Positions 42,408-57,510 of a stretch of 64,000 nt of DNA are shown piece after piece. Where the stretch lies: positions 2,046,001-2,110,000 of the forward strand of contig BQFW01000013.1 of the NCBI GenBank assembly GCA_020891255.1, read 5' to 3'. The translations under genes were made by a program, and so were the position numbers. Position 1 is the stretch's first letter. Each line of letters opens with the position of its first letter. The notes under the pieces are model-generated. The model was not told the origin of the DNA and did no database searches. It was given only the letters and a program-made list of their open reading frames with translations. Source of the stretch: Entomortierella parvispora E1425 (Eukaryota > Fungi > Mortierellomycota).

Positions 42408-45400
42408 ATGGACGAAGACGAAATCAACCAGAGCCTAGACCCGGAGCATCGCCTTGAGGGGACAGCGGAGTTGCCACCATTGAACAACTCGCGCATGATG
42501 CCCACATCTAGTCTCTCTACTGTGCCACCTCCATTCCAGAGCCAGCAAGAGTATTGGAGTTCGATGGGCCAAGATCAGTGGAGAGGTCTACCCCAGCCCC
42601 GTCGACAACAACAACAACAACAACAACAGTATCCTCGGCTTTTCCCTCCATGCCCAGAGTCACAACCCCTCGAATGGCAGCAGCCGCGTTGGCAGGAGCA
42701 ACAGACGCACACGTCCCTCGAACGGCCCACAGGCCATGTTTATGTAGCACAAACACGCCCAGATGCGGACCACTTTTGGTGGAACCAAGCAAACCTGCGC
42801 CCAGGGCACAGTCCACATGAGATGCGACACCAGGAGTCGCCGTTTTCCAGATCTTACTGGCCTGGTACTGGAGATCAGCATCAGCATCAGCATAGCAGTG
42901 ACTACAGCCATGAGCACCACTCACAGCCACATCCATACCCATACCCACTCCCACTCCCACTCCCACTCCCACATCTATTCCACTCTCATCCTCATCTACA
43001 CCAAGTATCGGATTCGCAAGCGACTTGGGCGTTACCTGATGATAATTCTCATACAGAGCGTCAGCGTTTCTGGACTCCAACGAGGCACACTGTGTCCCAG
43101 ATGGGTCATCCAGCCTCACCTTCTTATCCGGAGTCCCAGACCCTGTCTGTATCAGAGCCAGGTAGCCCCATACTATCGACTCGCGTGAGGCCTACCCCTA
43201 TGCCTTACAGACATCGCTCCAAAACTCTCTCATCCGCAACATCAGCGCCATACCAACTCCACCGCCTTGAACCACCCTCGATGAATTCATCTGCTACTGC
43301 GACGTCAGAGTTACCCCTAGATCCTAACCCTTACGCTTCAACTGTCATGCCTGAGCTATTCCGCGTGGACTCGGACGAGGTCCAACAGAGGAAGAGAGGC
43401 CGTACCAGCAGTCTTCGTTATGAAAGTACTCAACGACACCATTCACTACCAAGAGATGACTTTCAACCTTTGCACGGCCAACAAGGGTACTCTGGAAGCC
43501 ACCATCAGCCACTCAGTTCTCATAGCCATGAGCCCTTGCCAAACTACAGTCAATTTTCTTTGCCCCAACCTGTCTATTCTTCATCCACGGAAGAACCCAT
43601 GGTTAATTACCAGAACAAGCGACCTCTGGCTGTGTCGCCTCCAATAGCTGGAAAAGCGAAGCGCGTTCCTGACAATCGATTCCTCGAGAAGACACTTCCT
43701 CTTGACCAGCAGCCAAATCCGTCAGAATCTGGGCATTCACTCCGGGCAGGAGATCGCCAGCCAATGGTTCCCGGATATCAAAGCACGCCTTCAAGGACAG
43801 GATATCCGATCAATTCACACACGGTGGAGCCTGTCTCACATGGTGCTTCCTCATCGCAGAGCCTAGAGGTGTTGCCTGTCCACATACCTTCAAATCGCGG
43901 AGAGATCTTGAAACAGTCATCCGGGAGTCTATCAACCCAGCATCTGCACGAAGGAACAGCCGCGCTGGACACTTCCCATAATATCAGGCCCCCGCCTGGC
44001 GCACAGAGTCGGTCAACATCGCCCCTGCGACAGGCGCCTTCGTTGACTAGGCCTAGATCCAGTACAGTGCAAGGAAAATCATCTAGTGATTCTTCACATG
44101 AAGGAATAGGAAGTAGCCCAACAACAAATGAAATACCAAGTACAAGTCTTTCTGCCGATATAAGTCCGATGCTGACAGCACGGCTCGGCAAGTTGTTGGT
44201 CGCAACCAAGAAGCACATTATGGACTTGCTATTGTCATTCTTGTCTCTGGACGGCTATCGTATAGGTAGAGTGGCCACTTCTTTGGAGGCGATATGACGA
44301 ACAATTAGTACCAATTTGAAGTGAGAAAGATCATAGTAACCTTTCTCTTTAATTTCTTTCAAATAGCTCGCAAAAGACATCCTCGTTTGGAGCAAGTGCT
44401 TGTGGATCTCGTCAACGATATGCTATTGTTACACAGTGCATCGTCGATGCGTGATAATATATCATCTCAGGAGCGCCCAACTACTTTTCAGCCTACGCAC
44501 GTCCTTTCTTTGTCCCACTTAAGAGAGCTATCGGGATATACGGAAGCAGCTCTGATCGATCGGGAACCCGACAACCTCGCGGCCAAAACTCTTTCCTATT
44601 CCACGGAAAATCGATTACCAGCAGAGGATCAGTCTAAACAGCCTAATCACTTCACTGGAGAGAGAGCAAACGAGTATGGGTCTACAGTGGAGTTCTTGGC
44701 ATTGATGACCGCGTTTGTGAGCGTTGTGTGCTGGCTCTTGCAATCCAGATTGGACGAAGCATCTGAAAAAGGTAGGGTCGGAATGGAGGGCTTATCTGCA
44801 GGAGTCGAAAGACGTACAGGGATTGGCGAAATGGATGGAGGATTGTTGCGTTTTCTTTCTTACTTTCACGACCGAGACAACATTTTAAAGCCAATACAGG
44901 ATGCGCTGGCAATGACGGGAGTCAAAGGCGAGGGGTGGAATCCAGGATCAGAGAACGTCGATAGTGATGATTCCAGGTCGAGTTCGACTTCATTACCCTC
45001 TCAATCGCTCACTGGACAGGGAGGCGGTCTGTTCACATGGCACTTCCTCTTATTCTCGGAGGATCCTGATTCGCCGTCTCAATGGCCGTCGAGCAAGATT
45101 CTTCTCCAAGAGAGTTGTTCCTGGACAAAAGGCGATACTGTAGCCTTTGATGTCATTTTAAACGAGTTGTACTCCACTCAAGTTCTCGCCTTGACAGCCA
45201 AGGATCATCAGAAAGACCATGGACAATTCTACACGCCACCGGCTGTCGTTGATTTCATGTGGACGAGAGCTACATCAGGACGAGAGGGGAGGTTGTTGGA
45301 CCGCTTTGTGCAGTATCTCGAAAGCCACCGAGAGAACGCAGTGGAGATCACAATCGACTCTAGTTGGACGGACCCTATATCTTTGATCCCGAAGGCATTG

Positions 45401-48400
45401 GACCCGTGCCTGGGCGTATCCACATTCCTGTCGCGCTACGCGCGGCTGCTGATCAAGGAGGCGCGCCATAAGAGGCTCCTCTTGTCACAATCTTCTGTCG
45501 TCGGGCAAACTAAAAAAATGGATATGGACATCTCAGTATCACCCCCCGTCATGCTTTGGGATTCTGTCTCTGCTCTCCGACTGTTATTACGCCAGATATG
45601 CGATCATGCATGGGGACTGGAACTGGACGATTTCGCTTATTGGTTAGCCCGATGTGGCTTCATGGCGAACTTGATACCTCTCATACAGAGGATCGAGCAT
45701 CTCTCCCATGAGGATGCATTAGGGAGCCTACAGAGAACTGTGGACAAGGATGTCGCAATGCATTCGCCAGCGGCATTCACTAAACTGGAAACACCATCCC
45801 ACAATCGCTCTACAACGACGTCAGCCCCATTGAAACTTCCTCGACTCCATTTATTTTGCAATGACACGCTGCAACTGACAATACCTGGAGGTATGGCAGA
45901 TCGGCGCCACACAGGAACAAACGCGGATGATTTGAGCTGGGAACGATCACAAATCATGAGGCTGCGCGATCCGACAGAGCTGCTGTTTGATTTTATCGTG
46001 ACCAACCCACCGTACATGATTCGCAAGACAGGCACCTTTAGTACCCCAGATCCATTAATCTACGACTGGAAGGTATTGGGGGCGCCAGGGATTGTACCTG
46101 GAGTGGCGTTTGACTCATCAACCACCGTGGCGTCAGAGTCGCCTCTGGATGCGGATGAGACCGCTGATATAGTTCAGGATGACGAGTCTGATATTGATGA
46201 ATCAGGGGGAAGGTTCTCAAGATCACGGCAAGCTGAACTTCCAAAGAGCGCAGGTGCTTCAAGGTCTTCAAAGTCCAGCAATAGCTCTCGTGGGATGATG
46301 CAGGCCTATGGGTACTTCATCTGGTTCGCAGCGCAGAGAATTTTACCCAAGGATGGGGTCTTGTGCATGATCACTGGTACGTAACATCTTTTTCACATCT
46401 AGTCCTAAGTCTTTGAAAACCAAAAAAAAAAAAAAAAAAAAAGCGAGGAAATCTAACATTCCTTATTTTTTGCTTTATACAGCTAGTCAATGGCTAACGC
46501 TGGACTTTGCAATTCAATTGCGGTATGTGATTGGTGACTTGTAATCACTTTAGGTTGTTGTTGTTATGACTCTAATGAGATTAGTGTACCTCAATAGCGC
46601 TTGGTTGTTCGAGAATTGCTTGATGGATGAGCTATTCCAGTTTGAGCCTTACAAGGTGTTTGCAAAAGTTCAGACCGACTCTTTGATCTTCAAAATCCGA
46701 ACCTTGCCGCGAGGACCCTCCGATCACAATGATGACGATGTCCATGAAACGTTGTTTCTTCGACACTTGGTGCGTAGTCGATCATTGTCAGGGATCCTGG
46801 AGGACTACACCGATCTTTTGGGCCGTCTACGGATCTCACCACCCCAGGATGAAAATGTGATGGATCAGGAATCCTCGATTGCCCTCTCAAGGAAGAGTCG
46901 ACATGAATTGCAGGAAACAATCATGCCTCCGCGATCCCTGCCTTCAAATGATACACCTCGGCGCCGATCAAACGCACGAATGCCCGCTGGTGGCTGGAAC
47001 TATTCATTCGCTCCAATGATGCCAACGTCGAATTTGACAGAGCACATGCTTCGATTGACGCGAGGACTCGGAGGAATCTGCTCTGCAGGTACAAAGAAGC
47101 AAAATCGTCTCCAGGCTCTGGAACCTCTGCTCTGGCACCGAGGACCCAATACAAATCCGGTCTACGGGTTGGTGGTCAGGATGGAGTATGCAGAGGCAAA
47201 CTTTGGGCTCGCCATGACCAAGCAGTGGTTCCGTCCGGCCCTCTACTGGAACGGCAAGAATTCGCCTCAGGAGGGAGCAGATGAATCAGCGGCGACCATA
47301 TCAAAGGCATTGCATAAGGAAGGTCAGTTCTGGCAGAGCAGGGATCGTCTTCGTCTTAGCAAGAAGGAAGGGTCTCCTGCAGAGTCCTATCTTGTACCAA
47401 ATCCCCATTTGTCAACTGGACTTTATCCTACGGTCTCTTCTGGAGCCACACAACATCGCCATCGGTACGCACTCTGTATGATAGACAAGGAAGCGGTCAA
47501 AGTCTTGAAGAGGCAGAAGGAAGGCGGCGTAGAGGGTGCACAAGCTCTATGGAATTACCTCGTAGATGTTAGAGATCATTTTCAACCTGGATTCGCAGCT
47601 TCAAAGACTCCAAAAGGGAAGAAAGCATCTGGATCCGGTGTAGCTACTGGAGGAAAGAAGGTTACAAGTGCCAAGAAAACCGCATCTAGAGACGAAGCAG
47701 GGTTATCAGAATTACCAGGGGACGATGCTACGGTGTCTCAACAGATGAAAAGTGAGGAGTCATTACCGAAAACCGCCTCCGAGGACGAAGGAGTCGCGTT
47801 TTGCTCCACAAACCAATGCGGGTATGTTCTAATATTGGAGATACAAAACCACTGTCCATATAGAATATTAACCTTTATTGGGCTTCTACTATCTATAGTG
47901 CGGATGTTCCAGAAAAGATTGTCCACCCGATTAACTATGGCTACTTTTCAAAGTCACAGCCTCGCCAGAGGTTCTTCCTGGACCGAACCTCGTTGGCGGT
48001 CACGAACCAGTGCATCTATCTCACGTTGAACACATTTTCTCTTCACCAGGATGCCCTTCATCTTGCTACAAGTCCGCACGAGCTGATGATGTATTTTCTC
48101 ACCTTGCTGAATTCGAGTACGCTCCAGTTTTTTGTCTTGCACACATGCCAGTACGATCAGCAAGGGCGGATGCGACTGTTCCGGGAATCGATGGCCAAGA
48201 TTCCATTTCAGGACCGGGATCTGAGAACCAACAATCAACAACGGATGCAGTATGTCGTGAGGCTGGGGCAGACCATGATCGACTTGAAGGAGGTGCTATA
48301 TGATACCATCAAGGCCTGGAGGATAGGGGAGAACTTTGATACTGGATCCTCAGGACTGGGGACTGGGTCTGGAGCAGCAGCGTCGACTTCAGGAGGGCAG

Positions 48401-49513
48401 AGTATCTTGGACTGCATTCGACGAGGAGGAGAAATTCCAGTTGGAGTTCTAGATCGAACGCGAGAACATCTCGAGCGGATGCTGGGGCGCAAATATTCTC
48501 GACAGGCGGGCTCGTCCACTTCGGGTCTAGTGGATTTGACTGCGAGAGCTGGGTCTCTCACAGCAGATACTGACACGGACACAAATTCGATCATCACAGA
48601 TACGGACACGGAGACAGACGACAATAGAAATATCAGTCAATATCGCCCTCCCGTCATATCACAGGATCTAAGGACGTCTGGCCAATCTAGTCATTGGAGC
48701 ATGGCACAGAGTCATGGTCAGAGCGGCAGCAGTAGCGAGGGCAACGCTAGCCATTATCAACAATACCCTCTCATCCATTCTCCTATTCCTATTCACCCTA
48801 CTCAGCACACGTCATCAATTCAGAGACAGGAGACAGCAAACATCACCATTGTGGACACTCGCTACGAAGGGCAACACAGAAGAACCCCACAAAGACCCGC
48901 CACTACCGATACCTTTCACACATCCACGTTGTCCGATCCACAAGCTGATCTCCCCCTTTCCACTTTGCTGTCCGCCCTCCCGAACCCCTCACCATCGTTC
49001 TCTTCCGGAGTCCAGAGTAGATCCTCCAGCGCAGATGCAATTTGTGACCGAGCCGTCCGAAGTCTTGAACGGGCCATGTTGATGGTCGAGGTTTTGCAAT
49101 GGGCTGTAGATCAATACGGGTACATGCTCTACGGTGTGTCCTCCTCGGTTCAGATCCAGCTTGAGAAGGAGCTCAAGCTCGTGTACTCGTCTGCATTGGA
49201 CGAGGTGCTCCAATCGAGCATTGTTCAGGACAGTACGTCTGTGGCAAACCTTACAACGGTAACGGGTAACCTTGAGCAACAACGTGGATCCATCAACAAG
49301 AACTCGGCTTTGGAGGCACTCGACATCTTGCTCACTCCTCTCTACCGCTGGGACTTGGCTCCTCCATTGGCAACAGGATCTGGATCGGTCGAGGAGAGCA
49401 GCTCGACCGTGACTGATGACCTTGCACCACCTACTTATGCATCGTCTGTTTTGAAAAATGCTCAGATTGCTGTGCAACAATTGAAGGACCTTTTGGATTT
49501 GAATTCACTCTAA
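42408..49513 (+). CDS. Large intron-containing N6-adenine DNA methyltransferase of Eco57I/TaqI (gamma-class) type with a TaqI_C-like target recognition domain and long disordered extensions
   Basis: HGQFYTP (45221), LDPCLGVSTF (45401), WGLELD, CNDTL, FDFIVTNPPY (46004), AYGYFI...GVLCMITASQWL...LR...KVFAKVQTDSLIF, and a TRD-like EKI...RFFLD...NQCIYL...YFLTLLNS. Phase-consistent introns at 44266-44366, 46377-46482 and 46523-46597, plus one near 47820-47900. Confidence 0.85.
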
Positions 49514-55559: not shown

Positions 55560-57510
55560 TCTCTTTCCTCTCTTCCAGCGAGGCATGATCAGGGGAGGGG
55601 ATCGGACCGCAAACATCGCGAGCAATCCCGACAATACGGTTTACAAAGCGAAACGAAGCCCATAACGCGCTCTTTGCATGCTTCTTTCCCGATATTCTGG
55701 GAACAGATCCTCGCACGAGCCACAACTCACACAGCAGTTGTGATGGATGATGCCAGTGAGGCAGGAGGCGTCACAGAGCAAGAGAGGACTGCTCGCACGC
55801 ATCTGAGTGAAATCGATGTGCTCTTCCCGATCTTGTCTTTGACTTTTGGGGTCTGCAAATCGAGATGCAACAATTAAAGTCCTCCAGAGCCAACATGTCA
55901 ACACGGACAATAAGACACATGTCAACCGTCACAGCGCGACGGTTGAGGCGAACAAGCTTGGGATGTCTGAAGGCGATACGCGCTTGGCAGGACGATGGAT
56001 AGAAGGATCAGGTCGAATGCAGCAGGCGTATTTTTTAAATGTCCCTGTCAATGCTGCACGGACCATGGCAGGATTCAAGGACGGGCCCTTTAGTCTGCCA
56101 AGGAACGTGGTGCCACCGCCTCGCAATCTTCAGAAATCCGTGTTCCCTTTCATCGAGGACGCCTTGTTTGAACCCGGAACTTATCAACATACGGTGTGGA
56201 CTTCAAAGGTCGATAGAGAGATGCTGGACGCAAGCAATGAGGCTGAGGCTGCAAGCTTCGACTTGCTTCCATATCATGTCGAGACTCGCCAAAGGACTCG
56301 TGGCCCTGAGAGCATCAGAGATTACCCCAGTCAGCAATCATTTTTACTGATGCTTGCTCGCCTGCGCCATGTCGTTCTGCAGGATGCTGCTGAGTACATG
56401 TGGATTCAAGATCGACACTCAAATTGGAAAGGAACTAAATTCCCTTTGTTTGAAGCACACAAGGACATTTTCAATTCCCCAGCATTCATAGAGTATCGCC
56501 AGAAGGTATGGGATGAACTTGATCGTCATAATCTGGACAGCGACAATGACGAAAGGCAAACACTTCCTATTGCCTCCAGCCCCTCTCCTTCAGCAGTTGG
56601 GCTGCAGTCGCTTCAACCCTCCAACGAACAATCAGTTGGCACCCTCCGACAGCTCCACCATATTCAGAATGCCATTGACAGACTTCATCACCAGCAGGAG
56701 CAAATTGCACGAGCCATGGAGGACATGCAGAACGCCCTGTTGCAGCTCAAGTATCGCCAGTCGACAACCCCTACCCTTGCACCAGTAACGCCCACAGCAA
56801 CACCAAGAATGCCTCAGTCGGAGGCAATGTCAGACAGAACACTTGTTGCCGGCTCATCTGTGCAAGACCAAGATGGAGAAGACAGTGGTGGTTCAGATGA
56901 GGAGCGGGATATGGATGACGGTATACCCTCACTGCCCCTATCACGCTCAGGACCACGCCAATCTTTGACGCCACACCGCCCAAAAGGAGACTCGCCCTTG
57001 CCACTACATCCATTGGCACGAGAGCCAACGCACTCGAGGATCCCTCGTCTCCCTTTGCCTGATCGACCCCTAGGACAGCGCCTACCCTCACAACAACCGA
57101 CCGAAGGACTACTACAAGCACTACCTCCCTCCAGACTGATATCTTTCAGTCCTATACTCGAAGGAGTCGGCAACCCTCGACTCACAGTGCAAGAGATTTG
57201 GGATGAGCAGCAAAACTTCAAGCGAGCTAAATTACTCGGTCATTTCATTCATTCAGACAAGACGCTCACGAACCGGAGGAATATCTCGCGGTTTATTGAG
57301 TATCTAGTCCATTCTAACAAGGCAACTTCAGTTGCAGAGGCGATTGAGTATGTCCAACGGATTAGGGATCGTGAACCAAGAGCAAGTAGTACGGACAAGC
57401 TGTGGAGATACTGTCGGGACGCTCTTGACATTGCCAAACAAAAGGATGCTCAAGATAAACGCGCTGCTAAGGGCAAGGGGAAACACATTGCCCACCAAGG
57501 ATCAGAATAG
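55560..57510 (+). mobile_element. Crypton-F / Ndc10-domain-II tyrosine-recombinase-like gene with a C-terminal GCR1_C-like domain, 5' part disrupted
   Basis: KTHVNR (HxxR), LAGRW, MQQAY, RTMAGF, LPRNVVPPP.L...VFPFIE; C-terminal LTVQEIWDE...RRNISRFIEYL...AEAIEYVQRIR. Confidence 0.75.

Follow-up and report, generated by a model that had tools for sequence, protein, structure and literature searches.

We analysed a stretch of 64,000 nucleotides (nt) from the fungus Entomortierella parvispora E1425 (GCA_020891255.1, BQFW01000013.1 2,046,001-2,110,000, forward strand), hereafter the window; coordinates are window-based unless another contig is named. Its plus strand carries, at 42408-49513, what is on sequence grounds a real fungal gene, intact and divided into five exons, whose product is a DNA adenine methyltransferase of bacterial type. 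As judged from homology and phylogeny, it represents, in single copy, the Mortierellomycota orthologue of MetB, a protein of Mucor lusitanicus. It probably encodes an active, solitary and sequence-specific adenine methyltransferase that writes N6-methyladenine (6mA) on one strand, in parallel to the MT-A70 complex.

Gene structure and domain architecture

Four open reading frames (42408-44297, 44321-46384, 46566-48029 and 47993-49513) connect through four GT-AG introns, the 5' ends of which are of the fungal type (GTAGAG, GTACGT, GTATGT and GTATGT for introns 1 to 4). The joined coding sequence of 6,747 nt encodes 2,248 amino acids (aa) and a stop codon, with no internal stops. The joined exons were used for length and stop count; database searches and folds were run per exon or on database orthologues. 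An earlier sequence-only reading of this DNA had proposed an intron-containing gene for roughly 2,200 aa with a Q/H/P/S-rich N-terminus of about 600 aa, and both proposals agree with the model presented here (Table 1). Exon 1 is of low complexity (S 14.7%, P 12.6%, Q 8.7%, H 6.5%). Its final 30 or so aa begin the helical domain found throughout the family, and the junction over intron 1 restores the protein continuity seen in relatives. The microexon product corresponds to the conserved PSQW..LEFA..LR strand/helix of the methyltransferase; 9-11 of its 12 residues are kept at the same position in four related loci (L002, L003, L004 and L006) and 8 of 12 in the Mucor protein P0027. The C-terminus encoded by exon 5 is kept up to the last residues of the Gryganskiella protein P0079. 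Intron 2 contains an A-run of about 24 nt (46420-46443).

Motifs X, I and IV follow one another in exon 2 in the gamma-class order that the sequence-only reading had described, and motifs II and III lie at the expected places between them. That reading had also noticed that motif I (GVST) lacks its last Gly, and Ser indeed replaces the second Gly of GxG. In Pfam searches exon 2, taken alone, matches Eco57I at 29.1 bits, above the cut-off of 25.3, and N6_Mtase at 18.4 bits, slightly under the cut-off of 20.4. Exon 5 matches TaqI_C weakly, at 48089-48205 with 15.3 bits (cut-off 26.5). Among the relatives, Eco57I is detected in 38 of 38 proteins, N6_Mtase in 37 and TaqI_C in 24 (best E 3.6e-7). 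Matches to Pfam MmeI_Mtase also occur within the family. Exons 1 and 4 gave zero Pfam matches, no exon matched the MT-A70 domain (PF05063) in Pfam, and the NCBIfam search returned only noise. No nuclease family of Pfam or NCBIfam was found on any exon, as the sequence-only reading had anticipated. The N-terminal PD-(D/E)XK nuclease of type IIG/IIL enzymes has no counterpart here, given the lack of a nuclease match and the low complexity of exon 1.

The full methyltransferase and recognition-domain fold was modelled on the Mucor orthologue, and the exon 2 product was modelled for the window gene. The AlphaFold2 model of Mucor MetB (predicted local distance difference test, pLDDT, 80; predicted template modelling score, pTM, 0.72) matches best CamA, the orphan 6mA methyltransferase of Clostridioides difficile (Protein Data Bank, PDB, 7lt5 and others), with Z 25.6 and a root-mean-square deviation (rmsd) of 3.4 A over 537 residues (model 152-916 on chain 5-577). 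It also matches M.BseCI, M.TaqI, MmeI, DrdV, LlaGI and BrxX/PglX. The alignment begins at chain residue 161 of MmeI and 143 of DrdV, positions that we take to lie past their nuclease domains. The model of the exon 2 product (pLDDT 70, pTM 0.75) superposes on the methyltransferase domain of CamA with Z 14.3 (201 residues, rmsd 3.7 A), and it also matches MmeI 185-537 (Z 13.5) and the methyltransferase fold of HsdM. Its low-confidence stretches (64-88, 143-154, 194-215, 464-483 and 574-638) correspond to segments that the Mucor protein lacks. A phmmer search with the single exon 2 sequence found no match among PDB sequences, but profile searches did. The recognition domain is identified by the collinearity of exons 4-5 with that of Mucor, by TaqI_C in the relatives and by the superposition of the Mucor model on CamA and M.TaqI. 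In the predicted architecture, a helical domain precedes the methyltransferase, which is followed by the recognition domain and the C-terminal helices; disordered segments are added to this plan, and a nuclease is missing from it. Pfam, the structural matches and the homologues agree on the class that the sequence-only reading had assigned, the gamma-class N6-adenine methyltransferases of bacterial restriction-modification systems that carry a recognition domain.

CamA, too, is solitary: a recognition domain accompanies its methyltransferase, but a nuclease does not. The likeness is structural: CamA is a bacterial protein of 577 aa with 14-20% identity, and it has neither the helical domain at the N-terminus nor the disordered regions. 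Its target is CAAAAA, an A-rich and asymmetric motif that it methylates on a single strand. The same order of helical, methyltransferase and recognition domains is found in type IIL/IIG enzymes (MmeI, 5hr4; DrdV, 7lo5; BpuSI; the Eco57I family) and in PglX/BrxX of BREX, from which the fungal protein differs in having neither a cleavage module nor partner genes.

Table 1. Features of the methyltransferase gene in the window and of the loci compared with it
Feature	Location	Strand	Description
Exon 1	42408-44265	+	Starts with ATG; 619-aa S/P/Q/H-rich N-terminal extension, presumably disordered
Basic patch QQRKRGR	43383-43403	+	Exon 1
Start of helical domain (LGKLLVATKKH...)	44184-44265	+	Exon 1
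Intron 1	44266-44366	+	101 nt, GTAGAG...AG, phase 1
Exon 2	44367-46376	+	N-terminal helical domain and most of the methyltransferase
Motif X, HQKDHGQFYTP	45206-45238	+	Exon 2
Motif I, DPCLGVSTF	45401-45427	+	Exon 2
Motif II, WGLELD	45611-45628	+	Exon 2
Motif III, FCNDTL	45854-45871	+	Exon 2
Motif IV, TNPPYMIRK	46001-46027	+	Exon 2
Disordered insert	~46085-46282	+	Acidic/Ser-rich; exon 2
Intron 2	46377-46482	+	106 nt, GTACGT...AG
Exon 3	46483-46522	+	40-nt microexon encoding (A)SQWLTLDFAIQL(R)
Intron 3	46523-46597	+	75 nt, GTATGT...AG
Exon 4	46598-47821	+	Last methyltransferase strands and first half of the target-recognition domain
VQTDSLIF	46668-46691	+	Methyltransferase strands, exon 4
WHRGPNTNPVY	47133-47165	+	Recognition domain, exon 4
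Intron 4	47822-47898	+	77 nt, GTATGT...AG
Exon 5	47899-49513	+	Second half of the recognition domain (TaqI_C-like), linker, C-terminal helices
LLNSSTLQFF	48104-48133	+	TaqI_C-like region, exon 5
Linker	~48485-49040	+	Low-complexity, S/T/D-rich; exon 5
C-terminal helices	~49043-49498	+	Conserved; exon 5
Stop codon	49511-49513	+	Exon 5
Mortierella hygrophila upstream frame	L004:2102-5281		GCA_015680625.1, JAAAXW010000035.1; continuous with the gene
Actinomortierella wolfii S/P-rich frame	L006:692-2269		Public model begins inside, so part is annotated
AccI pair	L007:1887-4512		Latescibacteria metagenome-assembled genome OY282352.1; endonuclease gene, then N6_Mtase/Eco57I methyltransferase

Orthology with MetB and descent of the gene

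The family was named MetB after its Mucor lusitanicus member by Lax et al. 2024 (Nat Commun 15:6066, PMC11258239), who showed that its deletion in Mucor removes 70-75% of 6mA, namely the asymmetric class and the AAA(6mA)CA motif. The same authors found an MmeI-like recognition domain in MetB by HHpred, and concluded that the gene was transferred from bacteria long ago and then passed down vertically in Mucoromycota, Mortierellomycota and Glomeromycota, with a second, recent transfer in some Glomeromycota (PMC11258239). A 2026 review restates the MetB findings. How the family arose by horizontal transfer, which domains it has and what it does had thus been published before, and none of this is a discovery of this analysis. 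With MetB published in 2024, what the sequence-only reading gave as established, namely that this methyltransferase class belongs to prokaryotic systems and that known symmetric 6mA in early-diverging fungi is attributed to MT-A70 enzymes, is outdated. Already in Iyer et al. 2016 (PMC4738411), basal fungi are listed with EcoKI/TaqI-group methyltransferases fused to a recognition domain, and clades 5/6 of their Group-2 (M.EcoKI/M.TaqI) of eukaryotic N6A methyltransferases are likely to be the present family.

A word search with exon 2 returned fungal proteins only, from Podila, Linnemannia, Mortierella and Actinomortierella at 37-68% identity (68% to P0001) to Calcarisporiella, Scutellospora and the Mucorales Syncephalastrum and Dichotomocladium at the distant end (about 30%). 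In the reverse search from the Syncephalastrum protein we found one protein per species in Mucorales, Umbelopsis, Jimgerdemannia (Endogonales) and Glomeromycota, together with many Mortierellomycota proteins of 1,300-1,700 aa, a range capped by the length filter that was set; the bacterial matches reached no better than about E 1e-6. All six of the nearest named relatives checked, and M. lusitanicus MetB itself (OAD08303.1), appear in the MetB homologue list of PMC11258239. Exon 2 is 32% identical to OAD08303.1 (E 3e-39). Exon 4 shares 47-77% identity with Mortierellomycota orthologues and 33% with Mucor residues 426-687, and exon 5 shares 51% with Mucor residues 706-795, with a C-terminal block that aligns with residues 886-930. 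The exons are collinear with residues 160-930 of the Mucor circinelloides protein, including the microexon and the C-terminal helices.

We placed the gene in a maximum-likelihood tree of 29 sequences (quick search, LG+C20, Shimodaira-Hasegawa-like approximate likelihood ratio test support, rooted on three bacterial proteins). It adjoins the protein of the related contig L003 and then Gryganskiella, within a Mortierellomycota clade with a support of 100. Mucorales, Umbelopsidales and Glomeromycota each form a monophyletic group, and the fungi are separated from the three bacterial outgroups with a support of 100. Because these groups follow orders and phyla, the tree indicates vertical inheritance. 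The intron positions, including that of the 40-nt microexon, are common to Gryganskiella, L003, M. hygrophila and Actinomortierella. The old horizontal acquisition suspected in the sequence-only reading, which had suggested a phylogeny with bacterial homologues as a check, is therefore supported by the introns and by a tree in which the gene falls inside the fungal clade and the bacteria apart, in line with what PMC11258239 had reported.

The window protein keeps all 113 family-invariant columns of a 38-member alignment. In the comparison with the closest relative (L003), the ratio of nonsynonymous to synonymous substitution rates (dN/dS) is 0.17 in exon 2, 0.13 in exon 4 and 0.36 in the low-complexity exon 1, values that are rough because dS is near 1. 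Judged by these ratios, the gene is under purifying selection. It is single copy in a 38.9-Mb genome of 20 contigs; a six-frame search of this genome with Pfam Eco57I missed the window gene itself, so the method is limited for a divergent and insert-rich domain. We looked for synteny of the flanking genes with Gryganskiella and found none. The sole other N6_Mtase match in the genome lies on contig 7 and was rejected as a paralogue, as it is a small MTS/Methyltransf_31-type methyltransferase. The contig 7 exon (L005:4907-5665, minus strand, corresponding to about 1368906-1369664 of G000:C7) matches Methyltransf_31, MTS (PF05175) and, weakly, N6_Mtase. It is unrelated to the window gene and is possibly the N6AMT1/HemK-like gene metA of Lax et al.

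Mucor lusitanicus MetB (975 aa) belongs to the same family and, by the tree and by single-copy status, to the same orthologous lineage. The two proteins are collinear from the helical domain through the methyltransferase and the TaqI_C-like recognition domain to the C-terminal helices, both lack a nuclease, and the motifs HQKDHGQ[FY]YTP and VTNPPYMIRK are identical. The window protein is longer (2,248 aa): it has the disordered 619-aa N-terminus and roughly 100 N-terminal residues more, its methyltransferase contains four or five disordered inserts, and a linker of about 185 aa lies ahead of the C-terminal helices. Its motif I reads GVST where Mucor has GIGS.

The deep bacterial origin of the family is taken from PMC11258239; we scanned 185,579 bacterial and archaeal species genomes with the signature peptides of the family. 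One locus was returned, a 525-aa methyltransferase encoded directly downstream of an AccI restriction endonuclease gene in Latescibacteria. It shares the fungal signature HQKDHGQF, carried here as H-R-K-D-H-G-Q-F and otherwise seen in the fungal MetB clade only. This methyltransferase is not a close relative but illustrates the restriction-modification ancestry of the class.

Features specific to Mortierellomycota

Motif I reads DPCLGVSTFL in the window protein and in all eight Mortierellomycota compared, and DPC[LM]G[IVT]G[SAG]FL in other fungi. The change from Gly to Ser is fixed across the phylum and hence does not reflect decay of the window copy. The stem branch of the Mortierellomycota clade is long (1.7 substitutions per site). 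The low-complexity N-terminus, of 500-1,000 aa, is also found phylum-wide and is under-annotated. An open frame of L003 aligns with 552 aa of exon 1 at 49% identity. In M. hygrophila, an unannotated S/Q/P/H-rich frame of 1,059 codons lies just upstream of the annotated start and ends in LGRLLISTRQH, as does exon 1 of the window gene in its own version. The N-terminus is at least partly absent from the two public gene models that were checked (1,620 and 1,672 aa). KAG0336982 and KAG0336983 of Podila humilis are adjacent accessions, which suggests one gene split into two models.

In the papers searched, those that mention MetB alongside Mortierellomycota included, the long form, the disordered inserts within the methyltransferase and the Gly-to-Ser change of motif I are undiscussed, and a form more than twice the length of the Mucor protein with an altered cofactor-binding residue may be unreported. 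The disordered N-terminus and inserts are specific to this phylum and probably have no part in catalysis but act in nuclear targeting, in the binding of partners or in regulation. We think it rather unlikely that MetB was remodelled in this phylum to about 2,200-2,800 aa such that the N-terminus, the inserts and the motif I Ser give it a mode of action different from that in Mucor. If it was, the remodelled protein could, for example, be recruited to chromatin or condensates, have gained a new target motif, or have lost catalysis and retained sequence-specific DNA binding, and truncation or splitting may have masked the remodelling in public gene models.

Proposed activity and alternative explanations

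The MT-A70 complex (MTA1c: Mta1/Mta9/P1) is the other 6mA writer of early-diverging fungi and belongs to an unrelated methyltransferase class. MT-A70 enzymes have a beta-type motif order with DPPW, and the complex writes symmetric ApT methylation. In the activity proposed for the window gene, the helical domain, the methyltransferase and the recognition domain would bind a short asymmetric DNA motif, the target adenine would be flipped into the NPPY pocket, and a methyl group would be moved onto it from S-adenosylmethionine. The product would be asymmetric 6mA, like that of Mucor MetB at AAA(6mA)CA, beside the symmetric ApT methylation of MT-A70. The same genome has three loci with MT-A70 domain matches above the Pfam cut-off (G000:C12:978255-978925, C15:263076-263886 and C15:1636553-1636912); the stops that interrupt them are probably introns.

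Orthology, copy number, vertical inheritance, motifs X, I, II, III and IV, the fold and purifying selection were established on the family and the window gene themselves; we infer activity, substrate and target motif from Mucor. Several points weigh against the proposed activity. Throughout Mortierellomycota the second Gly of GxG is replaced by Ser, which, with the long stem branch, may indicate altered cofactor binding or function. The methyltransferase fold is broken by four or five disordered inserts in the exon 2 model, and the recognition domain is below threshold in the Pfam search. Its identity to that of Mucor is just 33-51%, which makes the target motif unpredictable. 6mA is abundant in Mortierellomycota, at 1.3-1.6% of A, and if most of it is symmetric, as may be the case, a contribution of MetB would hardly show.

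The motif I change, the stem branch, the large inserts and the gain of a 500-1,000-aa low-complexity N-terminus could all be accounted for by a pseudo-enzyme, that is, a Mortierellomycota protein without methyl transfer that acts as a sequence-specific DNA-binding or scaffolding protein of chromatin and recruits partners through its disordered regions. We regard this as unlikely, as a loss of catalysis should let NPPY and the cofactor-contacting residues drift, and motifs X, II, III and IV and all the invariant positions, NPPY included, are kept, and the exons that encode the catalytic part have dN/dS of 0.13-0.17. Deviations from GxG also occur in active relatives such as M.TaqI. The idea in the sequence-only reading of a DNA-binding regulator survives solely in this form, and it is disfavoured because the catalytic motifs are conserved in full. 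The divergence of the recognition domain from that of Mucor would also fit an active enzyme with another substrate or pattern, such as RNA m6A, single-stranded DNA or a different, possibly palindromic, DNA motif. In type IIG/IIL enzymes of the MmeI family, specificity shifts through few residues of the recognition domain, which speaks for such a change. In addition, several eukaryotic clades of the group may act on RNA, according to Iyer et al. (PMC4738411). However, the nearest structures (CamA, M.BseCI, MmeI and DrdV) are those of double-stranded-DNA methyltransferases solved with cognate DNA, and the Mucor orthologue works on DNA (PMC11258239), so that we consider another substrate or pattern improbable and still favour one-strand 6mA on DNA.

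The domain family is otherwise prokaryotic, the signature motif of the fungi recurs at a single bacterial locus, which holds an AccI restriction-modification pair of the classic kind, and the second transfer described in some Glomeromycota (PMC11258239) was recent. These observations could suggest a recent transfer from bacteria (for example from an endosymbiont), contamination of the assembly or a part of a working restriction or defence system. All three were rejected, as far as sequence can decide, as extremely improbable: the introns are conserved, the tree contradicts them, and a nuclease is missing. Four spliceosomal introns, one microexon among the exons they delimit, hold positions conserved across the phylum, the gene is nested in a vertically inherited fungal clade, and about 185,000 bacterial and archaeal species genomes yielded one locus with a signature peptide that passed tblastn. 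GC content matches that of the flanks, and the gene lies on a multi-megabase contig among eukaryotic neighbours. There is neither a nuclease domain nor an adjacent nuclease gene of such a system; as nuclease, partner gene and operon are all lacking, the defence factor that the sequence-only reading had considered finds no support.

MetB is the only known fungal writer of asymmetric 6mA and has been studied in Mucor alone. The full-length model from a near-chromosome-level genome of the Mortierella type indicates that this phylum of oil-producing soil fungi has a conserved, selected and single-copy orthologue of more than twice the Mucor length. At least three public Mortierellomycota gene models are truncated or split, and the present model gives the correct target for 6mA work; the gene opens no new question. 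Downstream in the window, an open frame of 554 codons (55846-57507, plus strand) matches the NDC10_II domain (PF16787, E 4.8e-10). NDC10_II is often tied to Crypton-like or KDZ-type mobile-element proteins in fungi, and the neighbourhood of the gene looks rich in element-derived genes.

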